64,000 nt of DNA from Octopus sinensis. Lineage: Eukaryota. The translations under genes were made by a program, and so were the position numbers. Below the pieces are notes generated by a model that saw only the letters and a program-made list of their open reading frames with translations, was not told the origin of the DNA and searched no databases. Shown piece by piece: positions 1 through 40,447 of this stretch (position 1 is the stretch's first letter; the number at the start of each line of letters is the position of its first letter). The stretch is from the NCBI RefSeq assembly GCF_006345805.1, contig NW_021825821.1, positions 1 to 64,000 on the forward strand. Direction: 5' to 3'.

Positions 1-293
1 CATAAAAAATAGTATAGTTCTTTAACGGTTAGACACCAGGTCTCCGCGTTCGACAGAGGAGTTGTACAATCAAATTCGAAGACGGGTTCCTAATTCACTT
101 ACGTCTCATTCAGATTGTCTACATTTTTTATTTCACAAATAAAATGCAATAATTAATTGTTAAAATCAATGAAAAGACGTTGAAGTTCATCTAAGTCGAC
201 CCCTTCAATCAAATTAGGAATCCCCAGTTTACGTGTTAAAAGCTTTTTATTCTTTTCGACCAAACTTGCGATTTCATCAGTTTCACTAACCAT
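1..293 (-). other. Possible 5' part of an unidentified gene running off the window start
   Basis: Open stretches MVSETDEIASLVEKNKKLLTRKLGIPNLIEG... and EPVFEFDCTTPLSNAETWCLTVKELYYFL. I found no convincing splice model joining them and no recognised family. Confidence 0.25.
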
Positions 294-371
294 ACAAAAT
301 CAAGACTTGCAACCACAATAAGAAAATTCAAATAATGATAAAAAGTCGATTGAAAAAACTAATAAATTATA

Positions 372-4031
<3,660 letters not shown>

Positions 4032-4306
4032 TATAATCCAACAGAGTAACTCTACAAAATTGTAAATTTTACAATTTTCAATAACATTTTTAATTAGAAA
4101 AATATTCAAAAATAATAAATTAATACAATCCTATTTTTATACTAAATTTTTTTCTACTTTCTTATTTTAGGTCATGTTTAGTGCTGTCAATCAAAAGAAA
4201 TTTAAGTATTTAGAAATGTTGCAATTAATAATAAAGATGATTTTACAAATTAAAAAATGATTTTTTTGATATTCAATAATATTTCCAAGACACTAACAGT
4301 TGCTTT

Positions 4307-5070
4307 ATGATTGAAAACGAATTTGACGATTTTATAAGCAAAGTGGACAATATTTGTATATAAATAATCCATAAATTAGCCAAATTAATAAAAGAAATGA
4401 ACTCGTCTGATCAGGAAATTCAAAATAAGGCTCTAAAGGCAGCGGACGACTATTGCTGCACAAACAGTAGACTAAATTAAAATATCATCTTGTTAGAACC
4501 CAACGGAGTCGACAAAACAATTTTTAATACAAAAGAAGTAACAAAAAATTCGGAATTTGGTAAAATTAAAAAATTTTATTAAACAAAGACACGTTCAAGT
4601 CACTAATTGAACAAGACGCAAAACAAAGAAGCCTGGATCGTCAAAAGAGATACGAAGAAGCAAATCAACTCAAAGAAAAAGGCACTGAACACTATAAAAA
4701 CCAAAAATATGATTTATCGTGCGAATATTTTACAAAAGTTGCGCTTTTGGTTGATTGAGAACAGGCAATTGCCAAGGCAAAGGATTATTCCCAAGTGTAT
4801 GGACTGCGTGCACAAGTCTACCTGATACTTAAACAATATAAAAATGCTTTAAAAGACTGTGAAACATGCTTTCAAGTTTTGCGAAATTACTCACCATAGT
4901 TAGAAGACTGGAATAAAAAAGTATGCGTTAGAAAGCTGAAATGTCTGCTGGCTCTACGGGAAAACGAAGAAGCTGCTGAATTTTTGCATATCTGCGTGAA
5001 CAAATATCCCGATTATAAGGAAATTTTTAATCTTAAATACGACCAATTTCGGAACACTCTTAACAAATAA
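4307..5070 (+). CDS. TTC12: TTC12-like TPR protein, short form without the ARM region (copy 1)
   Basis: Spliced translation MIENEFDDFISKVDNISKLIKEMNSSDQEIQNKA...ANQLKEKGTEHYKNQKYDLSCEYFTK|AIAKAKDYSQVYGLRAQVYL matches the TTC12 N-terminus and TPRs. Introns of 24-27 nt; stop TAA at 5068-5070. Confidence 0.8.
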
Positions 5071-5201
5071 TTTAAAATTTTCTCTTAATTAATAAAATTA
5101 AAAATGATATAAGTTTAAAATAATAGCAATAATATAAATGTTTAAAATATTTGGACATAACGTGGCAGCTATATTGTCTTTAGTGCAGTTTACAATAACA
5201 A

Positions 5202-7409
5202 ATGCAAACTACAATATTCAAAGAACTAACTTATTACAATTTATCTACAGTAAAAGCACTCCCTGATGTACTTTGAATATAATAATAATCACAGTGGCTC
5301 CCCGACAGGCAACGAAGGAGGCTGAACAGAGACAACGCAGGTTTTGAAAATAATATTAACGTAAAGACATTCGAGAACGGATACAACTCGTGCAAGATCT
5401 GAATATGCCTTCAACTTGCCACAACCTGGTGATTACCCCCGACAATTCATATTTGTGGGCCACTGGTTTGTTCTGCTATAATATTCCAGGCAGTTATAAA
5501 CCTGTGGTTAAGTGTTTTGACCTGAAAGGAATGGTTCTTAAATTTGAGCGTGGAGTCGACCACGTAGTCAAACGTGTGTGCTCCCTTTCAGACGACTACT
5601 CAAAAGTGCTGGTTATTTTACGCATTTCAGCCTGCCTTTTTGATGGCTGATCGTTTTGTTGAATTCCACAACAGCAATGGTCTTCACTATCGGCTGAGGA
5701 CTCCACGGCAAGGATATGACCTGTCTTTTTATCAGCGGGGAGGAGAACTGTACATACCCTCGGGGTCTCCTCAAATTTATCGTGTCAATCTCCATTTGGG
5801 AAGATTTATGACACCCTTGGAGACTTCTGCTCGGTATTTAAATTTTTATTAACTAATTTATAAAATAGTTATGTTAATTGTTCTGACATATCTCCCCACC
5901 ACAATCTTCTACTTTGTGCCACTGTGGATGGATTCGTGGAAGCATGCGATCCCAGAAGTGCGAAATTCGTAAGCAGACTAAACATCAAGGAGGGACTGTC
6001 TCTAACAACAGTAAAATGGCTCGACGAACTACATTTTGGCGTCGGAACTTCTTCTGGCCTTGTACAGATTAGATTTGATGTACTTTAGGTTTATCTGTAT
6101 GACGTAAGGTCGAGTGTGCCCGTCCAGGTGAAGGACCACCATTATGGGCATTCCATAGTCAGTATGTCGTACCATTCTCAACAACGACTTGTTTTCTCTA
6201 TGGATTCCAAATCTTTGAGAGTTTGGAACGAAATTGGAGTATGTGATTTTTTTAAACTGTGTAGGGGGATACTGTCTGTAATATCGAGGGGGATGTTCCT
6301 TACAATTGTTTTTGTCGGTATCCAGACTCCGGACTTGTTTTGATTGGGTCAGACCAACCTGATATAGAGACGATATTCGTTCCTGTTTTTTGTTTCTCAT
6401 TTAATTCTGAATTAGTCATTCGGGACAGCTCCAAAGTGGTGTTCTTATCTCGACCAAGTCGTAGACACCATTGAAGCTTCCAACAAGGAAAATTCGAGTA
6501 ATTCTTTATTATTAATGGCTAGTCTACGACGACTATAAATTCATGACGAGGAACGATCTCGATTCTGCTGGACTCGGTCATCTCATCGGGACTCGGTATT
6601 TGCGTGCGTACATGCATGGGTTCTTCATCACGACCAAGCTATACGAGAAGGTAGTCTATTCGCGATATTAAAGTTGTCCAAAATTTCCGATGTTGAACCA
6701 GAGTCTCCTCCTTCAGAAGAAATCGTTGAACCAGTCCCACAAAAGCCCCTTTCAAAGGAATCATTTGTCCTCGTGAACAGTCACATTGCAGAGAGAATTG
6801 AGAATGTTGACATTGACGAGTCTAATCGCGTTTGTTCTCAGTATTTGACTAATTTAGTTATTACGTGTATATAAAGACGAACGTTTCTCTTCTCTGTTCA
6901 CCGACCCAGATATGAAAATCGAAAGAGAAAACCCCGATTACGTCATGCATGAAAAGTTGTACTCTAAAGTGTTCAAAATTTCTCAAGTTTTATTTTTTAT
7001 AACCTTAGGATGACCCTGGTGACCGTTTAATGGAGAAGGACGACAGGAATCAACGGTATCATGAGACTTTGAACAGGATGAAGTCAGGAGTTGTTGACCA
7101 CGTCGAGTCACAGTCAAAGTCGTTGATTGTCTGCACTTCTGCACATCTTGATGACGTCTCAGCTGAGAATGCACTAACCTCAAAAGAGTGTGGATATTTT
7201 TTAATGTTTGTAGGCAAGCTATATCCAAGAGGCTCGCAATTTCAAAGCCTGGTGTTTCCCGTGTCAATGGAGGCTTAGCTAAAACATTCAGACCACTAGC
7301 CTCCGTAATATTAAGCTTATTGCTCGCGACGTCATGCACTGTCCTCCAGTTTATAAATTTACAATCATTTCGTCCTGGACTATTCCTTGCTCTGCATTGC
7401 CTGTTCTAA
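5202..7409 (+). CDS. NOL10: Nucleolar protein 10 (copy 1); native C-terminus replaced after 7297
   Basis: MQTTIFKELTYYNLSTVKALPD|WLPDRQRRRLNRDNA|DIRERIQLVQDLNMPSTC; also VKDHHYG, LGPAPKWCSYLDQV and LRAYMHGFF. The read-through past the duplication breakpoint ends at 7409. Confidence 0.85.
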
Positions 7410-22854: not shown

Positions 22855-24861
22855 GGAACCATTCGAAGGAACACCCAGAGGACTTAATAAAGACATCACC
22901 CGCTATGAAGTCCTTTCAGCCTTGAGCAAGCTGAAAAATGGCAGAGCTTCGGGACCAGACAACGTGACTGCAGAGTTATTAAAATACGCGCCGGACAGAG
23001 TGGTTGAGTTGATCTGCACAGTCCTGAACAGGACGTTCAACTACGTTACCTGGGAGTAACTATAGACCCCTCCGGGTCATACAAACCCCATGTGCATGCA
23101 AAGCGGAAACAAGGAGCGAAAATCCTAAAAGGACTGAAGCGTTTTTGTCTAAGCGCAGAAACGTTTCTACACATCTACCAGACTTGTGTTCAGCCACTAA
23201 TAATCTATGGCTCGGAGGGCTGGTACCAAACTGATGAAAGGGACCTTCTAATCGCCAAACTCGAAAAAACCAGACGATTTGCCATCAAACTGGCATTCGG
23301 CCTGGAGCTCAGCAGTCCGCTGGAAGACCTGCATGAGCGGAGTGTTGACACGATTGACGCGATCCTGGCAAAAACTCGAACTCGCTAAGGGAGATAAGAC
23401 AGTCTCCTGGGGCAAAACCGAAGTTGAGACCTTCGTGGCTCTCGTTATCGAGCCCCCTAAGCTCTAATTCCTCGGCCACTTTTCTTTTGGACCTATTGTA
23501 ATAAATAAACCATATTCATTCAAACCTGGAAAGGAGAAAGGAAATCTAAACAGCCTACGCCCGGTTACGCTAATGAATACGCTAAGGAAAATACTTTCCC
23601 TTGTTGTGCTGGATCGTATTTCAGGACCTGTAAATAAGTTCCTAAACCCGAGTCAAAGTGGATTCAGACCTGGAAGGTCGACAGCAGACGTAGTATGGAG
23701 CCACAGATGGCTGTGTGCAATGTGCCAGAAACACAAAGAAAAAATCTCAATCCTTGGAATTGATCTATCCCGTGCTTTCGATACAATCAACCGCAAAAAG
23801 CTGATGCATGTATTGGAAGGCATCCTAGATGGGGATGCATTACGTATGATCAGATTCTTACTCGCCAACACATCGCTATCCGTGCGTGTGGGAAACTATA
23901 CCTCGATGAAGTTTAAAACCGACACTGGCGTACCTCAGGGCGACTCGTTATCTCCGGTTCTATTCATAATCTACCTGGAGGCAGCCCTAAGACCTCTTCG
24001 GAGGAATAAATGCTTTACCAACGTGATGGAAGTAACTTACGCCGACGATATTGATTTCGTCTCCCGAGATCAGGACTCACTGGAAAACTTATTAAAAGTG
24101 ATCCCTCATTCGTTGGAGGACTGGTCCCTTGTAATAAACCCGGACAAAACGGAAAGAACTACCATATCCCGCCTGGGGACGAGAAACGAGGAGAAGTGGA
24201 GAACATGCAAGAAAGTTGGATCTCTCCTTGGGGACTCGGAGAACGTTATTCGTAGGAAAGTGCTGGCTGTTGCATCCTTCAAAAAAATGTGGACGATCTG
24301 GATGAGGCGCAAGTACATAAGAACTCTCCTTCGAATTCGGCTGTACAACTCCTTTGTCGAACCAATCTTGCTTTACAACGCGGGGACCTGGGGCCTAACC
24401 GCTAAAGAACTGGAGCAGCTCAACTCTTTCCACAGAAAACAACTACGACTACTCCTGGGAATTCACTGGCCAAAAAAGATGACCAATAATGAACTCTACA
24501 GAATCACCCATACATCCGAGATTGCAAAGAAAGTGATGTTCACGAAGTGGATGCTCTTTGGACATGTCCTAAGAGCCTCGGAAATGACGCCGGTCAATCA
24601 GAACATGGAATCCTACTTCTGCTCATTAAATAAAACGGCATATAGGGGCCGACAAAGAACAACATTACCGACTACGCTCGACCATGATCTCACGTCGATT
24701 GGAAGGAAACTGAAATCGGCCGATGATCTGGACGAACTGAGATACCTCGCACCTAACAGGGGAGCGTGGATACGACTAACAGAGCGTATCCTGAGTCGGA
24801 TGGCAAAAGTGGAATCTTAATTAACTTTTTGATTTCGCGAGATTGCTTTAATAATAATAAT
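22855..24861 (+). mobile_element. RTE-like LINE copy B1, interrupted at ~23042-23520; RT ORF 23573-24820 open; (TAA)n tail
   Basis: LKNGRASGPD linker; 415-aa RT with GVPQGDSLSP and YADD; AAT-repeat tail ending at 24861. Confidence 0.92.
23042..23520 (+). mobile_element. 5'-truncated 3' end of the APE LINE family, forming an inverted repeat with ~24885-25362
   Basis: Near-identical to the reverse complement of the LINE 3' end. Replaces ~48 bp that are present in RTE copy B2. Confidence 0.9.
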
Positions 24862-27604
24862 AGAGAATAGAAGAAGAATAGAATATGGTTTATTTAATAC
24901 AATAGGTCCAAAAGAAAAGTGGCCGAGGAATTAGAGCTTAGGGGGCTTGATAACGAGAGCCACGAAGGTCTCAACTTCGGTTTTGCCCCAGGAGACTGTC
25001 TTATCTCCCTCAGCGAGTTCGAATTTTTGCCAGGATTGCGTCAATCGTGTCAACACTCCGCTCATGCAGGTCTTCCACCGGACTGCTGAGCTCCAGGCCG
25101 AATGCCAGTTTGATGGCAAATCGTCTGGTTTTTTCGAGTTTGGCGATTAGAAGGTCCCTTTCATCAGTTTGGTACCAGCCCTCCGAGCCATAGATTATTA
25201 GTGGCTGAACACAAGTCTGGTAGATGTGTAGAAACGTTTCTGCGCTTAGACAAAAACGCCTCAGTCCTTTTAGGATTTTCGCTCCTTGTTTCCGCTTTGC
25301 ATGCACATGGGGTTTGTATGACCCGGTGGGGTCTATAGTTACTCCCAGGTAACGTAGGTTCTTCGATATAATCAGGTTCCCATAATCCTCGAAAGTCGGT
25401 TTTTTGTCACGACCCATTGAAATCCAACAAATGGTACTTTTGTCTAGAGCGAGATTCAAGCCTTTACCATTGCACCAGATTTCAAGTTCCTCCAAGTACG
25501 GTTCTAGTCTGCTCCAGGACAGCCTTCTTCTGTGTCGGGGTCCCCACATCGAGACATCCGTAACCAAGATATCGTCCGCGTAGATAATTAGTCTGCTCGT
25601 AGGAAAATGTGGTTTCGGGACGTCAGCCAGAAATATATTAAAGAACAAGGGGCTGAGAACCGATCCCTGAGGAACACCTCTCCTCAGATTCACGGCCTTC
25701 GATAGCAAATTTCCACAACGAATGAACGATTTTCTCTCACACAAGAAGTCCTTAAGCCATCTGACAGTTTTTCGCCCAGCACCCAACTCCGCTACTTTAT
25801 CTAACAACCCCAAGTGCCAGACACTGTCAAAGGCCTTGCAGACGTCCAGGCAGACCGCCGTTAGGCAGGCTTTATGTTGTTTGGCCCGAGTCAGTTCTTC
25901 CTCAAGAAGCGAGAAACAGTGACCGGTTGATCGACCAGGTCTAAAACCCCACTGTTCCTCCGCGAGTATATTATTTTGTTCCACGTAAGCCGATAAACGA
26001 TTGAAAATAATTCTTTCCATTATCCTCGACGTTGTGCAGATAAGGCTAATTGGCCTATAACTTCCTGCCTGCGTATTTGGTTTTCCAGGTTTTGGGATCA
26101 TTCGGACGATTGTTCGTTTCCAGCTAGGTGGGACGTGACCATTGTCCCAACTGGCATTGAATAGTTTTACCAGAATACGAAGCAAGCATCCAGGTGCCTT
26201 CTTGAAAACCTCCATAGGGATGAAGTCAAATCCAGGAGCGTTGTTCTTGCAACCTCTGATTGCTTCGAACGTCTCTTCCGTGGTTATTTCTCTGCACAAG
26301 GGTCCATCCAAAACAAGTTTTGAGAGGGAATTTCGGGTCGACTCCTCGAATATTTTCAGAGGCAGGATAGACGAAGGGTCTACCTCCTGAATCCCTGCTA
26401 GCTGCTGGTGGAAGACCTCCGGGACTTCCTCAGTAGGAACAAAGCCTCCATCACCGATTTAAGAATGATTTCTTCTCCTTTCGCTTCCGTCCCGTTCATT
26501 ATTTTGTATAGTTTCCAGAATTTAGGATTTTTCATGTTGAGTTTTAAGCATTCTCTCTTCCATGCCTCATCTGTGTTAGCTTTAATCAGCTCGTCGATCC
26601 GACTCTTCAGGGTGTTGATTCGGGCCTTTAGACTTCCAGAGTCCTCCGATTCAAAACACCTCCTTCTTTTGCTTTCCAGTCGCGCCTTGTCTCTGACTAG
26701 CTCAGATAGTCTAGTTTCGGACCTCTTCGCGCAAGATCCCTGGGATTTCATATGTTTTTTAGAAGCGAATCTGTCCAGAAAGGCCACCACATGCTTTCGT
26801 ATGGCCATATCGAGATGATCAATACTTTCACTCGTGGACAGATGCATGTGGGAGAGAGGTTCCAAAGCTGCACCCATGAATATGGCGAACATGGGCCATT
26901 GCACAGGGGACAAGTCGTATCCCGTGAAGAGATCTGATACCAACTCCGTAGATGTCCGCAACAACATTGATTGGGTCAGATGGTCACTCCCAGTCCGCAT
27001 TTCTATCCGGGGCCTGTCGCAAAAAGGGCTCACAGACGCGGAAGAAAGAAATAGTCCGAGGCGACCTCCACTGAAGCAGAAATGATTAAGTTCCTCAGAA
27101 GTCCAGACATTAAGGTCATATTTCCTCGCGATCCTCAGTAAAGCCCGACCATCTTGGTTAGAGGTCTCGCATCCATAAGCGGTATTTTTGGCGTTGAGAT
27201 CTCCCGCAAGAATGGCCATCTCATTATCCTCAAAGAACTTCCTGATCACTTCAGGGTAGTTTCTGAGGTCCTTCGAGTACATTCCACCGATTGTTATCCA
27301 TCCAATGGAAGTTAGGAGTTCTAGTGCGATCAGTTCGCATCGGTTCTCTTCAAGGATCCTCAAGTTCTTTACAACAATGTCGGCTTTGTAGTAAAGCGAG
27401 GATCCCGTTCCCGCAATCGCCCCCGACCTCCATGGAATGTGGAGGGATCTATAGCCTTCGAATTTGATCTGCCGAGGCCCCTTCATTTTGGTTTCGTTCA
27501 CAATTAGGACATCTGTCTTTGCCAAGGTCAGAAGGGACCTCAGCTCCGTTGCCCGTCTCGTGAGAGACCGGGCATTGATAAGCGTTATCACGCTCACACT
27601 TGAT
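24862..27604 (-). mobile_element. Near-complete ORF2 of an APE-RT LINE (Jockey/I/CR1-like) with one frameshift near 26458
   Basis: APE motifs NARSL, NETK, GDLNAK and SDH; RT motifs EQWGFRPGRST, GVPQGSVLSP and YADD; TTC/TTCTA-type 3' tail. Inserted in the RTE (TAA)n tail, with the empty site at 32414-32431. Confidence 0.92.
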
Positions 27605-27610
27605 TTGGTA

Positions 27611-27717
27611 ATAAACAACTTGCTGGGCAAACCAGAGAATTCGGGATTCTTCGTTCTCGACAAAAACCCCGTACTTCGGATCAGTCAGTTCGTGGAACAA
27701 CAACATGAAAAATTCCT
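27611..27717 (-). other. Captured 107-bp HERC fragment (one HECT exon plus 9 nt of the following intron) at the LINE 5' end
   Basis: 103/107 identical to 1358-1464 and to its copy near 34413-34519. Confidence 0.92.
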
Positions 27718-27833
27718 CACACTTGATAATATCATGGGTTGGATAATACCCTCTCGAAGGTGCACCGTTGCTGCGAAAGGTTCAAAAGGTGCTAATATTC
27801 ACATGATTGAGTGTATTGGTTCGGGTAGATTAA

Positions 27834-29739
27834 TCTTAATAATAAAATGGTATGGTGTGTGTGTGTCTGTCTGTCTGTCGTTCTGTCTGTCTGTCTGTGT
27901 GTGCACACCAACTTCAAATTGGCAATACGATGTCCTCGACTTACATGATGAGGTCCTTAAAACCTTCCCTCCAAAAAAAAATTAAAAAAAATTTTCTGCA
28001 TTTTCGTTAAAATGAACAACTACGATGTCCTCGACTTACATGATGAGGTCCTTAAAACCTTCCCCCTAAAAAAAAATTAAAAAAAATTTTTCTGCATTTT
28101 GGTCAAAATGAACAACTACGATGTCCTCGACTTACATGATGAGGTCCTTAAAACCTCCCCCCCAAAAAAAATTAAAAAAAAATTTTCTGCATTTTGGTTA
28201 AAATGAACAACTACGATGTCCTCGACTTACATGATGAGGTCCTTAAAACCTTCCCCCCAAAAAATTAAAAAAAAATTTTCAGCATTTTGGTTAAAATGAA
28301 CAACTACGATGTCCTCGACTTACATGATGAGGTCCTTAAAACCTTCTCCCCAAAAAAAATTAAAAAAAAATTTTCTGCATTTTGGTTAAAATGAACAACT
28401 ACGATGTCCTCGACTTACATGATGAGGTCCTTAAAACCTTCTCCCCAAAAAAAATTAAAAAAAAATTTTCTGCATTTTGGTTAAAATGAACAACTACGAT
28501 GTCCTCGACTTACATGATGAGGTCCTTAAAACCTTCCCGCCAAAAAATCAAAAAATTATTTTCTGCATTTGATTAAAATGAACAACGTTAATGTCCTCGA
28601 CATTCATGATGAGGTCCATTAAAACCTTCGAGGCAAAAATCTCACGTATTAAGAATATCCTTGATGAAAACGACAGCAAGAATATTAACAATGCCACTGC
28701 TGACTCTTAATTAGCTATTTTGGTTAAGTTTTTTTTTCGATAAAAAAATTAAAGCTATTATCATATTTGACTTTGAATAGAGTGTGCAATTAACAGATTT
28801 TGAAAAACCACTTTGATAGTTGAAACCACATTAGCACAATCATTAAGACAATTTACCACCAATTGACAGCGCAATCTGAAGAATTTGCGTAAAAATATTC
28901 ACTATTTAGTTAAGTTTTTCGTAAAGATAAAATTTATTTTCGGTATGTCTCTTTTCCTAAACTTTTTTATTATTCAAAAATAATTTTTTCAATAGATAAC
29001 CGAAGGAGGGAAGACGACCTTAAGAAAATAAGTTTTTCGTAAAGATAGAATTTATTTTCTGTATGCCTCTTTTTTCCTAATATTTTTTATTATTCAAAAA
29101 TAATTTTTTAAATAGATAACCGAAGGAAGAAAAACGAAGCTGAAGAAAAAACGGGCACCTTAAGGTAATTAATTAAATCTTTTTTGTGTGTCGCTTTTTT
29201 GGCTGCTGCTACTCTGCCTGCCCCATTTCCGCCAGTGGTTTTATTACGAAATCTTGCGCCACCTAAATTATGCAACGGAACGAGGTTAGTTATCAAAAAT
29301 TTAATGGCTAACGTAATAGAGGCGACGATATTAACAGGTAAGTATAGAGGTGAGGATGTATATATTCCACGAATTCCGATAATTTCTGATGAATTACCAT
29401 TTAGATTTAAAAGGCTGCAATTTCCTTTGAGGATGAGTTTTGCAATGACAATAAACAAGGCCCAGGGACAGTCATTAAAGGTAGTTGGGTTATTTTTAGA
29501 GAATGAGTGCTTTTCACATGGACAGCTGTATGTGGGATGCTCGAGGGTAGGCAGAAGAGAAAATTTATTCATATATGCCAAGGAAGGACGGACGACAAAC
29601 ATCGTTTATCAACAGGCGATAGAATAGGGTTACATTAAATCAGGTAGTTTTATACATCTACATAAACTTATAGTTGTTTGATGAAACAGGCCCTCCGCAG
29701 GAGCTAGGTCGCGGTGAGCGAAGCGAGCTGCCGAGCTAG
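27834..29739 (+). mobile_element. Non-autonomous Helitron
   Basis: 5' TC and 3' CTAG, inserted between A and T with no TSD (empty site GATTAA|TACATT at 32533/32534). PIF1 helicase C-terminus at 29184-29627 (LCNGTRL, FAMTINKAQGQS, FSHGQLYVGCSRV). GC-rich subterminal motif. Confidence 0.95.
27920..28625. repeat. ~95-bp minisatellite, about 8 units, inside the Helitron
   Basis: TACGATGTCCTCGACTTACATGATGAGGTCC recurs at 27926, 28021, 28117, 28212, 28305, 28400, 28495 and, degenerate, near 28587. Units differ mainly in homopolymer lengths. Confidence 0.97.
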
Positions 29740-30260
29740 TACATTATAATGCTAAAAAAAAGCAATTTGTCGATGCAATTGAATGGATGAGCTCATGTTT
29801 AAGAAATGCTTACAATACCGACAAAAAAACATGTTGCAGTTATCTTGGATAAGGCCCCCTGCCATTCTTGTATTGAAGAAATTTTATTAGAAAAGGAATT
29901 TAAAATTCATAAATTTTTAAGAATAGCTCCTTACAGTTCAATGGTTAATCCTATTAAACATATTTGGTCTGTAGTAAAAGCCGATATAAAAAACCTTGCT
30001 GAAAAAAGAGCAGATTTATTAAGTGATGAAGTTCGTGAAAATTTATCATTAAGAGAATATTCTCTTGAATTTTTAGAAAAATTTATTGAAAAAGGCAAAC
30101 TTTTAATCGTTCCTAATTTGTCTTGTGTTAATTGTTTGCCCATATACAAGGAAAAGTACCGGCGGCATTAGCTTTAAAAAACATGCAATTTTAATGATTT
30201 TTTTAAAGTTTTAAAAATTTACTAACTTTTTTTCCATTTAGTTTGAAACTATTATAATAT

Positions 30261-30931: not shown

Positions 30932-32430
30932 TTGAGCAAGCTGAAAAATGGCAGAGCTTCGGGACCAGACAACGTGACTGCAGAGTATTAAATACGCGCC
31001 GGACAGAGTGGTTGAGTTGATCTGACAGTCCTGAACAGGACGTTCAAATGTCACAGCCCATTTGATGCGGGGAATGCCACTTTAATCCCATCCAGAACCT
31101 GGAAAGGAGAAAGGAAATCTAAACAGCCTACGCCCGGTTACGCTAATGAATACGCTAAGGAAAATACTTTTCCTTGTTGTGCTGGATCGTATTTCAGGAC
31201 CTGTAAATAAGTTCCTAAACCCGAGTCAAAGTGGATTCAGACCTGGAAGGTCGACAGCAGACGTAGTATGGAGCCACAGATGGCTGTGTGCAATGTGCCA
31301 GAAACACAAAGAAGAAATCTCAATCCTTGGAATTGATCTATCCCGTGCTTTCGATACAATCAACCGCAAAAAGCTGATGCATGTATTGGAAGGCATCCTA
31401 GATGGGGATGCATTACGTATGATCAGATTCTTACTCGCCAACACATCGCTATCCGTGCGTGTGGGAAACTATACCTCGATGAAGTTTAAAACCGACACTG
31501 GCGTACCTCAGGGCGACTCGTTATCTCCGGTTCTATTCATAATCTACCTGGAGGCAGCCCTAAGACCTCTTCGGAGAAACAAATGCTTTACCAACGTGAT
31601 GGAAGTAATTTACGCCGACGATATTAATTTCGTCTCCCGAGATCAGGACTCACTGGAAAACTTATTAAAAGTGATCCCTCATTCGTTGAAGGACTGGTCC
31701 CTTGTAATAAACCCGGACAAAACGGAAAGAACTACCATATCCCGCCTGGGGACGAGAAACGAGGAGAAGTGGAGAACATGCAAGAAAGTTGGATCTCTCC
31801 TTGGGGACTCGGAAAACGTTATTCGAAGGAAAGTGCTGGCTGTTGCATCCTTCAAAAAAATGTGGACGATCTGGATGAGGCGCAGGTACATAGGAACCCG
31901 CCTTCGAATTCGGCTGTACAACTCCTTTGTCGAACCAATCTTGCTTTACAACGCGGGGACCTGGGGCCTAACCGCTAAAGAACTGGAGCAGCTCAACTCT
32001 TTCCACAGAAAACAACTACGACTACTCCTGGGAATTCACTGGCCAAAAAAGATGACCAATAACAATGAACTCTACAGAATCACCCATACATCCGAGATTG
32101 CAAAGAAAGTGATGTTCACGAAGTGGATGCTCTTTGGACATGTGGAGCTCTTGACGCCGGTCCAATCAGAACATGGAATCCTACTTCTGCTCATTATAAA
32201 ACGGCATATAGGGGCCGACAAAGAACAACATTACCGACTACGCTCGACCATGATCTCACGTCGATTGGAAGGAAACTGAAATCGGCCGATGATCTAAACG
32301 AACTGAGATACCTCGCACGTAACAGGGGAGCGTGGATACGACTAACAGAGCGTATCCTGAGTCGGATGGCAAAAGTGGAATCTTAATTAACTTTTTGATT
32401 TCGCGAGATTGCTTTAATAATAATAATAAT
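30932..32430 (+). mobile_element. RTE-like LINE copy B2 (5'-truncated, frameshifted)
   Basis: Near-identical to B1 without its insertions; ORF 31146-32279; (TAA)n tail. Confidence 0.92.
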
Positions 32431-32965
32431 ATCATGGGTTGGATAATACCCTCTCGAAGGTGCACCGTTGCTGCGAAAGGTTCAAAAGGTGCTAATATTC
32501 ACATGATTGAGTGTATTGGTTCGGGTAGATTAATACATTATAATGCTAAAAGAAAAGCAATTTGTCGATGCAATTGAATGGATGAGCTCATGTTTAAGAA
32601 ATGCTTACAATACCGACAAAAAAACATGTTGCAGTTATCTTGGATAAGGCCCCCTGCCATTCTTGTATTGAAGAAATTTTATTAGAAAAGGAATTTAAAA
32701 TTCATAAATTTTAAGAATAGCTCCTTACAGTTCAATGGTTAATCCTATTAAACATATTTGGTCTGTAGTAAAAGCCGATATAAAAAACCTTGCTGAAAAA
32801 AGAGCAGATTTATTAAGTGATGAAGTTCGTGAAAATTTATCATTAAGAGAATATTCTCTTGAATTTTTAGAAAAATTTATTGAAAAAGGCAAAATTTTAA
32901 TCGTTCCTAATTTGTCTTGTGTTAATTGTTTGCCCATATACAAGGAAAAGTACCGGCGGCATTAG
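32431..32965 (+). mobile_element. IS630-Tc1 remnant copy B2 (no Helitron)
   Basis: Near-identical to 27728-27833 joined to 29740-30171. Confidence 0.85.
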
Positions 32966-33429
32966 CTTTAAAAAACATGCAATTTTAATGATTTTTTTAA
33001 AGTTTTAAAAATTTACTAACTTTTTTTTCCATTTAGTTTGAAACTATTATAATGTATCATAAAAAATAGTATAGTTCTTTAACGGTTAGACACCAGGTCT
33101 CCGCGTTCGACAGAGGAGTTGTACAATCAAATTCGAAGACGGGTTCCTAATTCACTTACGTCTCATTCAGATTGTCCACATTTTTTATTTTACAAATAAA
33201 ATGCAATAATTAATTGTTAAAATCAATGAAAAGACGTTGAAGCTCATCTAAGTCGACCCCTTCAATCAAATTAGGAATCCCCAGTTTACGTGTTAAAAGC
33301 TTTTTATTCTTTTCGACCAAACTTGCGATTTCATCAGTTTCACCAACCATAAAAAAATCAAGACTTGCAACCACAATAAGAAAATTCAAATAATGATAAA
33401 AAGTCGATTGAAAAAAGTAATAAATTATA

Positions 33430-37086
<3,657 letters not shown>

Positions 37087-37361
37087 TATAATCCAACAGA
37101 GTAACTCTACAAAATTGTAAATTTTACAATTTTCAATAACATTTTTAATTAGAAAAATATTCAAAAATAATAAATTAATACAATCCTATTTTTATACTAA
37201 ATTTTTTTCTACTTTCTTATTTTAGGTCATGTTTAGTGCTGTCAATCAAAAGAAATTTAAGTATTTAGAAATGTTGCAATTAATAATAAAGATGATTTTA
37301 CAAATTAAAAAATGATTTTTTTGATATTCAATAATATTTCCAAGACACTAACAGTTGCTTT

Positions 37362-38125
37362 ATGATTGAAAACGAATTTGACGATTTTATAAGCAAAGTG
37401 GACAATATTTGTATATAAATAATCCATAAATTAGCCAAATTAATAAAAGAAATGAACTCGTCTGATCAGGAAATTCAAAATAAGGCTCTAAAGGCAGCGG
37501 ACGACTATTGCTGCACAAACAGTAGACTAAATTAAAATATCATCTTGTTAGAACCCAACGGAGTCGACAAAACAATTTTTAATACAAAAGAAGTAACAAA
37601 AAATTCGGAATTTGGTAAAATTAAAAAATTTTATTAAACAAAGACACGTTCAAGTCACTAATTGAACAAGACGCAAAACAAAGAAGCCTGGATCGTCAAA
37701 AGAGATACGAAGAAGCAAATCAACTCAAAGAAAAAGGCACTGAACACTATAAAAACCAAAAATATGATTTATCGTGCGAATATTTTACAAAAGTTGCGCT
37801 TTTGGTTGATTGAGAACAGGCAATTGCCAAGGCAAAGGATTATTCCCAAGTGTATGGACTGCGTGCACAAGTCTACCTGATACTTAAACAATATAAAAAT
37901 GCTTTAAAAGACTGTGAAACATGCTTTCAAGTTTTGCGAAATTACTCACCATAGTTAGAAGACTGGAATAAAAAAGTATGCGTTAGAAAGCTGAAATGTC
38001 TGCTGGCTCTACGGGAAAACGAAGAAGCTGCTGAATTTTTGCATATCTGCGTGAACAAATATCCCGATTATAAGGAAATTTTTAATCTTAAATACGACCA
38101 ATTTCGGAACACTCTTAACAAATAA
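37362..38125 (+). CDS. TTC12: TTC12-like TPR protein, short form (copy 2)
   Basis: Same sequence as 4307-5070. Confidence 0.8.
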
Positions 38126-38256
38126 TTTAAAATTTTCTCTTAATTAATAAAATTAAAAATGATATAAGTTTAAAATAATAGCAATAATATAAATGTTTAA
38201 AATATTTGGACATAACGTGGCAGCTATATTGTCTTTAGTGCAGTTTACAATAACAA

Positions 38257-40447
38257 ATGCAAACTACAATATTCAAAGAACTAACTTATTACAATTTATC
38301 TACAGTAAAAGCACTCCCTGATGTACTTTGAATATAATAATAATCACAGTGGCTCCCCGACAGGCAACGAAGGAGGCTGAACAGAGACAACGCAGGTTTT
38401 GAAAATAATATTAACGTAAAGACATTCGAGAACGGATACAACTCGTGCAAGATCTGAATATGCCTTCAACTTGCCACAACCTGGTGATTACCCCCGACAA
38501 TTCATATTTGTGGGCCACTGGTTTGTTCTGCTATAATATTCCAGGCAGTTATAAACCTGTGGTTAAGTGTTTCGACCTGAAAGGAATGGTTCTTAAATTT
38601 GAGCGTGGAGTCGACCACGTAGTCAAACGTGTGTGCTCCCTTTCAGACGACTACTCAAAAGTGCTCATTATTTTACGCATTTCAGCCTGCCTTTTTGATG
38701 GCTGATCGTTTTGTTGAATTCCACAACAGCAATGGTCTTCACTATCGGCTGAGGACTCCACGGCAAGGATATGACCTGTCTTTTTATCAGCGGGGAGGAG
38801 AACTGTACATACCCTCGGGGTCTCCTCAAATTTATCGTGTCAATCTCCATCTGGGAAGATTTATGACACCGCTGGAGACTTCTGCTCGGTATTTAAATTT
38901 TTATTAAAATAGTTATGTTAATTGTTCTGACATATCTCCCCACCACAATCTTCTACTTTGTGCCACTGTGGATGGATTCGTGGAAGCATGCGATCCCAGA
39001 AGTGCCAAATTCGTAAGCAGACTAAACATCAAGGAGGGACTGTCTCTAACAACAGTAAAATGGCTCGACGAACTACATTTTGGCGTCGGAACTTCTTCTG
39101 GCCTTGTACAGATTAGATTTGATGTACTTTAGGTTTATCTGTATGACGTAAGGTCGAGTGTGCCCGTCCAAGTGAAGGACCACCATTATGGGCATTCCAT
39201 AGTCAGTATGTCGTACCATTCTCAACAACGACTTGTTTTCTCTATGGATTCCAAATCTTTGAGAGTTTGGAACGAAATTGGAGTATGTGATTTTTTTAAA
39301 CTGTGTAGGGGGATACTGTCTGTAATATCGAGGGGGATGTTCCTTACAATTGTTTTTGTCGGTATCCAGACTCCGGACTTGTTTTGATTGGGTCAGACCA
39401 ACCTGATATAGAGACGATATTCGTTCCTGTTTTTTGTTTCTCATTTAATTCTGAATTAGTCATTCGGGACAGCTCCAAAGTGGTGTTCTTATCTCGACCA
39501 AGTCGTAGACACCATTGAAGCTTCCAACAAGGAAAATTCGAGTAATTCTTTATTATTAATGGCTAGTCTACGACGACTATAAATTCATGACGAGGAACGA
39601 TCTCGATTCTGCTGGACTCGGTCATCTCATCGGGACTCGGTATTTGCGGGCGTACATGCATGGGTTCTTCATCACGACCAAGCTATACGAGAAGGTAGTC
39701 TATTCGCGATATTAAAGTTGTCCAAAATTTCCGATGTTGAACCAGACTCTTCTCCTTCAGAAGAAATCGTTGAACCAGTCCCACAGAAGCCCCTTTCAAA
39801 GGAATCATTTGTCCTCGTGAACAGTCACATTGCAGAGAGAATTGAGAATGTTGACATTGACGAGTCTAATCGCGTTTGTTCTCAGTATTTGACTAATTTA
39901 GTTATTACGTGTATATAAAGACGAACGTTTCTCTTCTCTGTTCACCGACCCAGATATGAAAATCGAAAGAGAAAACCCCGATTACGTCATGCATGAAAAG
40001 TTGTACTCTAAAGTGTTCAAAATTTCTCAAGTTTTATTTTTTATAACCTTAGGATGACCCTGGTGACCGTTTAATGGAGAAGGACGACAGGAATCAACGG
40101 TATCATGAGACTTTGAACAGGATGAAGTCAGGAGTTGTTGACCACGTCGAGTCACAGTCAAAGTCGTTGATTGTCTGCACTTCTGCACATCTTGATGACG
40201 TCTCAGCTGAGAATGCACTAACCTCAAAAGAGTGTGGATATTTTTTAATGTTTGTAGGCAAGCTATATCCAAGAGGCTCGCAATTTCAAAGCCTGGTGTT
40301 TCCCGTGTCAATGGAGGCTTAGCTAAAACATTCAGACCACTTAAAAGACATGAGTCACGAGTAGAGAAGCGTGACAAATATCACAGACAAGAACGGAAGA
40401 ATATACGTCGATCTGCCTCTACGCTTTTTACTAAGAAACGTAAATAA
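38257..40447 (+). CDS. NOL10: Nucleolar protein 10 (copy 2, native C-terminus)
   Basis: As copy 1, but ends HESRVEKRDKYHRQERKNIRRSASTLFTKKRK*, matching the conserved basic NOL10 tail (HRQERKxxRRSA). Confidence 0.92.

Follow-up and report, generated by a model that had tools for sequence, protein, structure and literature searches.

How does a single exon of a cellular gene come to stand at the 5' end of a retrotransposon, in the same sense as the element and bracketed by an exact short repeat? The question is raised by a window of 64,000 nucleotides (nt) from Octopus sinensis (assembly GCF_006345805.1, contig NW_021825821.1), in which a long interspersed nuclear element (LINE) of a family here called LINE-A carries a fragment of a HERC4-like gene at its 5' junction; genome-wide searches refer to the 2.72-Gb assembly. 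A first-pass annotation of the window had described, on the minus strand from 27727 to 27593, the order flank, ATCAAGTGTGAG, a 107-nt HERC match, TACCAA, ATCAAGTGTGAG and LINE, and every one of these elements was found at these coordinates and on this strand, which confirms that the 5' junction of a LINE copy bears a HERC exon fragment in the sense of the element. The locus very probably records one LINE insertion whose 5' joint was filled with templated HERC sequence and with a re-copy of the LINE itself. The parts of the junction, following the minus strand, are these:

27728-27843, minus strand: 5' flank, target DNA (97.5% identity to 32426-32544; no similarity to any LINE-A copy)
27716-27727, minus strand: upstream ATCAAGTGTGAG, a 10-12-nt re-copy of LINE-A and an exact second copy of 27604-27593
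27611-27717, minus strand: HERC-derived segment, comprising AG, the exon (96 nt) and 9 nt from the start of a 28-nt intron (103/107 identity)
27609-27610, minus strand: TA, the junction bases between HERC and LINE, from comparison of both templates with the window
27610-27605, minus strand: TACCAA, in which T and CCAA match LINE TTCCAA with one mismatch
27604-27593, minus strand: resident LINE 12-mer ATCAAGTGTGAG, inside the LINE-A body
24863-27608, minus strand: 5'-truncated LINE-A body with APE endonuclease and reverse transcriptase (RT) (98.6% identity to the copy labelled C9550, colinear over 2733 nt)

On the minus strand the flank ...CCCATGATATT runs into ATCAAGTGTGAG, followed by GAATTT...CAGCAA, the nine intron nucleotides GTTGTTTAT (up to 27611), TA, and then CCAA ATCAAGTGTGAG CGTGATAACG... 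of the element. The upstream 12-mer shares its first AT with the flank and its last AG with the HERC acceptor. The 107-nt match had been read as the whole exon plus nine intron nucleotides; it holds at 103 of the 107 positions, but since its AG is common to the 12-mer only 105 nt are exclusively HERC, and the exon measures 96 nt. The HERC piece and the LINE, both on the minus strand, are joined directly with only one or two bases (TA) between them, and the HERC frame (open reading frame, ORF, 27449-27781) differs from that of the LINE ORF (26398-27684). Within the window ATCAAGTGTGAG is present exactly twice, precisely flanking the insert; 12-nt repeats less than 150 nt apart are not rare there, and it is the position exactly at the insert edges that is not explained by chance.

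What kind of element is the carrier, and where does it end? Pfam domains Exo_endo_phos and Exo_endo_phos_2 (in 26398-27684) and RVT_1 (in 25010-26458) place an APE endonuclease and an RT in one sense-strand unit present in many copies, and the carrier is thus a LINE, that is, a non-long-terminal-repeat (non-LTR) retrotransposon. At least 40 LINE-A 3' ends occur in the assembly at 92-99% identity, together with 37 matches to the 5' part. The copies share their 3' end, with truncation points at reference positions 1548, 1637, 1729, 1854, 1859 and 1920; the window copy is the one truncated at 1729 (27608 in the window), while the full-length start lies near 552. Two long copies, C8694 and C8853, share 1177 nt more upstream, which gives a full element of about 3.9 kb. 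What had been called the LINE 5' end is consequently not a natural one, as the window copy is without the roughly 1177 nt present in its full-length relatives. At the other end, ...AATAAACCATATTC is followed by a variable (TATTC/TTC)n tail ending near 24863-24866, no poly(A) was found at the 3' end of the window copy or of the sister copies compared, and an AATAAA lies near the 3' end. The RT has 28-40% identity to anything in the protein collection searched; the few named matches are jockey or X-element, and going by the names given to these distant relatives LINE-A appears to be jockey/CR1-like. The window copy is young, with 16 private substitutions in 2745 sites (0.58%) and 98.6% identity to its sister copy, although a private 1-nt deletion breaks its ORF near 26448.

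Comparison within the family also settles the nature of the repeat. Five other copies cover the 12-mer in the upstream context ...GGCAGCCGCGTTCCAA ATCAAGTGTGAG CGTG... (reading GCGTTCCAAATCAAGTGTGAGCGTG), and because they run through it and on upstream, the 12-mer is internal LINE sequence. Full-length relatives read TTCCAA-ATCAAGTGTGAG where the window has TACCAA, which had been set apart from the LINE and is in fact its TTCCAA with one mismatch. Both the 12-mer and CCAA are therefore LINE sequence rather than filler. The HERC piece itself belongs to no LINE consensus: in the genome-wide search, in the family alignment and at the five other truncated copies, no HERC sequence was found beside any other LINE-A copy, and the earlier claim of a capture stands after this check. 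Self re-copying at 5' junctions as a habit of the family was likewise considered and was not seen in the five other 5'-truncated copies. Given that these five have plain junctions, the HERC capture is an accident rather than a family habit.

Did the HERC piece and the upstream 12-mer arrive together with the LINE? The window contains an older local duplication of 97.4% identity, in which 22922-23040, 23517-24862, 27726-27843 and 29737-30258 correspond to 30932-31047, 31089-32428, 32426-32544 and 32531-33053, and this duplication supplies an unoccupied counterpart of the insertion site:

32400-32450, plus strand: empty paralogous site ...GCTTTAATAATAATAATAATATCATGGG..., from a three-way alignment with the left and right junctions
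23517-24862, plus strand: 3' flank, a fragment of a second LINE (LINE-B, RVT_1) ending in (AAT)n (97.4% identity to 31089-32428)

At about 32426 the empty site runs uninterrupted (...GCTTTAATAATAATAATAATATCATGGGTTGG...), and 24863-27725 was therefore inserted as one block, to which the upstream 12-mer and the HERC piece belong as well as the LINE. Its site is an (ATT)5 tract at the end of the LINE-B fragment, with 0-3 nt duplicated relative to the empty site, and upstream of 27727 there is no LINE resemblance. These comparisons dispose of several simpler histories. A HERC piece inserted into the middle of an intact LINE is excluded by the empty site. The 12-mer is not a target-site duplication, being LINE-internal in all LINE-A copies examined and absent from the empty site, which reads ...AATAATAATATCATGGG... 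without ATCAAGTGTGAG; the 12-nt bracket noticed earlier thus remains an exact repeat at the insert edges, but by nature it is a LINE re-copy starting 4 nt inside the truncation point. Twin priming with 5' inversion was rejected as well, no inverted LINE segment being present inside 24863-27727.

A history in two events has one attraction, namely that a 12-nt direct repeat around an insert resembles a target-site duplication. A truncated LINE would later have been hit by a 113-nt insertion with a 12-bp target duplication, or else an unseen master element with an internal duplication-insertion would have been truncated at its edge. We regard this as very improbable. The CCAA, and the T two bases upstream of it, continue the LINE, whereas a LINE-like end of an unrelated insert would arise by chance at about 1/256 or less; the insert is without transposon features; no master with the insert exists in the assembly; and truncation exactly at the edge of the duplication would be a matter of about 18 in 3900. 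An artefact of assembly or consensus might also be suspected on an unplaced contig in a region full of duplications, but such an error would not give a 107-nt segment with four substitutions of its own, clean microhomology joints and a 12-nt re-copy, and the remaining LINE is colinear with its sister copies, so that an artefact seems highly improbable.

The surroundings of the target have a history of their own. The insertion target, LINE-B, has an RVT_1 ORF of 450 amino acids, and its fragments lie at 23468-24820 and 31089-32428, both on the plus strand. The LINE-B fragment that received the main insertion has a separate LINE-A insertion at its opposite edge (23041-23521, plus strand), a 481-nt 3' end in the opposite orientation with its own junctions and 97-98% identity to the main copy, which replaces about 41 nt kept in the paralogue at 31048-31088. 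Since the duplication, one copy (22922-30258) has been enlarged by these two LINE-A insertions and by extra DNA of about 1.9 kb (27844-29736), which includes two tandem-repeat arrays.

All three joints of the block show 2-4 nt of microhomology, in part imperfect (AT, AG and GTTC). Between flank and 12-mer, AT is common to the flank ...GATATTAT and to the LINE ...AAATCAAG. Between 12-mer and HERC, AG is common to LINE GTGTGAG and HERC TTTTTAG. At the third joint GTTC is found in both templates, at HERC intron positions +10 to +13 and in LINE GC-GTTC-CAAATC; since the window has T-A-C there (LINE GCGTTCCAAATC, HERC TATGTTCTTTC, window TATTACCAAATC), the crossover is imperfect or includes one or two extra bases, and the TA may be non-templated or may be an imperfect copy of the common GTTC. 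The first-pass annotation had proposed template switching guided by two short homologies, AG and ATCAAG. Of this proposal the AG is upheld and switching is plausible, with DNA-templated repair as an alternative to which we return, while ATCAAG has to be dropped. The HERC exon preceding the captured one does end in ATCAAG (34542-34547), identical to the first six bases of the 12-mer (27722-27727), but TGTGAG intervenes between ATCAAG and the exon, and a switch guided by it would yield ATCAAG/GAATTT or CCAA-ATCAAG/GAATTT instead of the observed ATCAAGTGTGAG/GAATTT. We treat the shared ATCAAG as an unexplained coincidence.

From which gene did the piece come? It matches two places in the window, each at 103/107 (E = 3.8e-42), and a genome-wide search with a 135-nt query bearing the junctions returned only three matches, the LINE locus and these two plain HERC exons:

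34413-34519, minus strand: matching exon in HERC4-like copy B (gene at about 33433-37086), 103/107 identity
1358-1464, minus strand: matching exon in HERC4-like copy A (gene at about 376-4030), 103/107 identity

The LINE copy lies between the two, and its 5' junction is about 5.7 kb downstream of the copy B stop codon along the direction of transcription. Each HERC gene is contained whole in a 7.3-kb duplicate (1-7297 and 33058-40341, 99.5% identity). The first of these duplicates begins at contig base 1, and either the array goes on beyond it or a break or collapse of the assembly occurred at this point. Each copy is a compact minus-strand gene of about 3.7 kb and about 1000 codons, with RCC1 repeats and a HECT domain (HECT profile positions 25-305 at 33436-34417). 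The gene model aligns to HERC4 of many animals with E = 4e-133 and 100% query coverage, at an identity of just 31-35%; with N-terminal RCC1 repeats, a C-terminal HECT domain and best matches to HERC4, the donor gene belongs with HERC4, an E3 ligase of the RCC1-repeat and HECT type. It holds roughly 18 introns of about 19-29 nt, of which three (24, 24 and 28 nt) were verified by homology, automatic models with a minimum intron number or length being partly wrong. The captured exon lies between introns of 24 nt, on its 5' side, and 28 nt, on its 3' side, and the spliced peptide around it (...EFFMLLF...WFAQQ/ACDNMEIFW) aligns ungapped to five HERC4 proteins, which confirms the exon and intron limits. 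The idea that the donor was a partly spliced RNA finds no splice junction to rest on: AG, exon and the first 9 nt of the 28-nt intron are colinear with the genome.

The donor was probably neither of the assembled copies. The four differences that had been counted against both local HERC copies, three of them synonymous, are confirmed as CTG>TTG, CTG>TTG and CTT>CTG (all Leu) and CTT>ATT (Leu>Ile), with variant bases T, T, G and A at 27703, 27700, 27686 and 27640. At the 0.58% private divergence of the LINE, about 0.6-1.0 differences would be expected in 107 nt where four are observed (Poisson P = 0.004-0.02), and with synonymous changes making up 20.5% of the possible substitutions in the exon, the probability of at least three in four being synonymous is 0.029. 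Decay after insertion and polymerase error are both unlikely causes on the strength of this excess and of the synonymous bias (P = 0.03), and adenosine-to-inosine RNA editing was rejected since none of the four is A>G. Because the LINE copy is young and the piece nevertheless carries four differences in 107 nt, three of them synonymous, the donor was probably another functional HERC allele or a tandem copy missing from the assembly. This bears out the earlier suggestion of another or older functional allele, with neither assembled copy a probable donor, and as the contig start cuts off the HERC array, the assembly may lack more of its copies.

A differing HERC haplotype would also be accounted for, along with the sense orientation and the genomic colinearity, by a 5' transduction. 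Here a truncated LINE-A would have resided at position +9 of the 28-nt intron in another HERC copy, and a HERC-driven transcript, which the AATAAA near the LINE 3' end could terminate, would have been retrotransposed in trans, its truncation falling at the start of the exon; the 12-mer would represent one intramolecular back-jump. Transduction of 5' exons by L1 is documented (Law and Burns, 2025; bioRxiv 10.1101/2025.02.02.635956). In the present case, however, the 135-nt query found no progenitor with a HERC-LINE junction in the assembly, an extra jump is needed for the 12-mer, and landing beside HERC would be a coincidence, which together make this history quite improbable.

How, then, was the joint made? 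In the sequence of events that we favor, a young LINE would have retrotransposed once into the (ATT)n tract downstream of a HERC4-like gene, and its first-strand complementary DNA (cDNA) would have halted about 1.18 kb before the element 5' end, at ...CCAA. Instead of joining the target, the polymerase would have moved to HERC, on a template of the sense strand; the simplest candidate is an unspliced transcript from an allele or tandem copy of HERC outside the assembly. Copying would have run from intron position +9 back across the 96-nt exon to the acceptor AG. A second switch, through this AG, would have returned it to the LINE 4 nt inside the earlier stop, where 10-12 nt (ATCAAGTGTGAG) would have been copied before the product was joined to the upstream target end through AT microhomology. 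That the templates were RNA and that the RT moved between them in serial microhomology-guided switches, from LINE to HERC to LINE to target, is a proposition on which our judgement is evenly divided. We infer the order of the switches, the enzyme and the RNA nature of the HERC template. An RNA template is favored because the sense orientation is shared and because the piece nearly coincides with one exon. The product is a tripartite chimera of 12 nt of LINE, 105 nt of HERC and 2.75 kb of LINE. As its HERC frame is unfused to the LINE ORF, its LINE is truncated and frameshifted and its site is intergenic, the chimera is non-functional, and no function is expected of it.

Several observations weigh against RT switching on an RNA template. 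Nothing in the HERC piece marks an RNA intermediate, neither a splice junction nor poly(A), and it stays colinear with the genome into the intron; its sense orientation is worth only a two-to-one argument. It is internal, with a target duplication of 0-3 nt, whereas classical chimeras contain full-length RNAs and have 10-20-bp duplications. Switching in trans does not predict that the donor is the adjacent gene; this would take either a DNA template or some local effect, by way of nascent or read-through RNA. The return to the LINE only 4 nt from the point of departure, with 10-12 nt copied, is more typical of abortive DNA synthesis primed by microhomology. As for a hairpin that might have blocked the polymerase, the LINE RNA near the stop point is predicted to be only mildly structured (z = -2.85 versus shuffles), and its nearest stable stem is about 10 nt away.

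Much of this agrees with DNA-templated filling of the gap during 5'-end joining, whether by microhomology-mediated end joining (MMEJ), by a polymerase-theta-like enzyme, by a process of the microhomology-mediated break-induced replication (MMBIR) type, or by the LINE RT working on DNA. The target 3' end would prime on the cDNA through AT, 4 nt inside the end of the latter, extend by 10 nt and dissociate; it would then invade the antisense strand of the nearby HERC gene through AG, copy 105 nt and re-anneal with the outermost bases of the LINE cDNA. From an entire genome, the donor is the neighbor gene on the same contig, 6.7 kb off; the fragment follows the genomic DNA into the intron; the 12-mer was re-copied 4 nt from the end of the cDNA, as is characteristic of abortive priming close to a break; and short microhomology is present at every junction. 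The adjacent donor and the 12-nt re-copy are, in fact, better explained by DNA-templated repair. Templated inserts of about 100 nt from kilobases away are, on the other hand, unusual for DNA-templated end joining. Moreover, the 4/107 differences from both local copies, with their synonymous bias, oblige this account to assume an unassembled third copy or another allele as well, and neither the sense orientation nor the near-match to one exon, starting at the acceptor and ending at intron +9, is predicted by it. We consider DNA-templated filling possible but rather unlikely.

A local form of RT switching would couple the capture to the locus, the LINE polymerase, stalled at its target, having copied nascent unspliced HERC pre-mRNA that was being transcribed a few kb upstream on the same strand. 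This form appears unlikely. If it were true, retrotransposition would borrow RNA made next door, and with introns of about 24-28 nt it would provide a ready route for moving single exons together with their splice sites.

How does the locus compare with chimeras described elsewhere? Bipartite and tripartite LINE chimeras, attributed to single or double RT template switches, are documented for mammalian L1 (U6/L1-type) and for MGL/WEIRD/Mg-SINE of Magnaporthe, and such chimeras are recognized by a 3' part from a 5'-truncated LINE, a 5' part from a full-length cellular RNA in the same orientation, and a flanking repeat of 10-20 bp (Gogvadze et al., 2007; PMC2104539). The present block resembles them in that its 3' part is a 5'-truncated LINE, the foreign sequence has the same orientation, two switches would give three parts, and the whole is missing from the empty site. 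It differs in four respects. Its 5' piece is no full-length small or abundant RNA but 105 unspliced nt from the interior of a protein-coding gene of about 3.7 kb; its third part comes from the same LINE, copied again over 12 nt; the donor gene lies next to the insertion; and the target duplication amounts to 0-3 nt in an (ATT)5 microsatellite. Exon-bearing L1 chimeras with a sense bias have been reported in human (Law and Burns, 2025; bioRxiv 10.1101/2025.02.02.635956), and these share with our locus a sense exonic host sequence at the 5' side of a LINE insertion. Those cases, however, are mostly spliced first exons ending at splice donors, on L1 of full or almost full length, and were attributed to trans-splicing or upstream promoters, whereas here an internal exon with nine intron bases stands on a truncated element and no progenitor was found.

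Two general modes of joining offer further comparison. Truncated LINEs can attach their 5' ends by MMEJ or by synthesis-dependent MMEJ, with extra or templated nucleotides. The 2-4 nt of microhomology at each joint and the short re-copy a few nt from the cDNA end fit this mode, but typical fillers are much shorter and come from much nearer than the roughly 105 nt seen here, whose source gene lies 6.7 kb or more away and is of a different haplotype. Non-LTR RTs such as that of R2 jump end to end: having reached the 5' end of one template, they continue at the 3' end of another. Serial jumps with zero to few extra nucleotides at the joints are common to both, although neither HERC boundary is a known RNA end.

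A last question concerns the organism to which the locus belongs. Unplaced contigs hold all 77 LINE-A matches and every compact HECT gene. On the chromosome-scale scaffolds the exons of HECT genes are widely spaced, among them those of a HERC4 at C5:45741234-45805300, which are 45-72% identical to oyster HERC4, compared with 38-56% for the gene in the window contig. Octopuses host dicyemids. In animals, introns of less than 30 nt have been reported only for myxobolid myxozoans and for the dicyemid Dicyema japonicum (PMC13644364), and the Dicyema genome consists of 49% repeats with many copies of LINE ORF2 (PMC6736024). The 24-28-nt introns, the 31-35% HERC4 identity and the restriction to unplaced contigs point to a second organism, and the window probably derives from a dicyemid-like (or myxobolid-like) parasite co-assembled with a mollusc-type host. 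Thousands of unplaced contigs in the assembly are probably also those of a second organism with ultra-short introns.

Other repeats occur in the same part of the window. A 95-bp tandem repeat (27926-28629, 7.4 copies, 93% matches) stands beside a (TGTC)n microsatellite (27856-27902), and on C3092 this satellite is found again, in opposite orientation, beside another LINE-A copy. Remnants of mobile elements lie on the plus strand at 29169-29627 and 29803-30171, with a Pif1/helicase-like (Helitron-like) ORF and a DDE_3 transposase fragment.

The locus is a well-resolved natural case of a tripartite LINE chimera, for which the empty site, the sister copies and the donor gene are all available, and its jockey/CR1-like carrier, far from mammalian L1, comes from a very poorly sampled and fast-evolving animal lineage. 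On the reading that we favor, serial template switching at the 5' end would not be special to L1, and exon-sized unspliced pieces of a neighbor gene could travel along with a LINE, which would make them raw material for exon shuffling. The probable second genome in the assembly is a practical by-product of this analysis and may matter more than the chimera itself.

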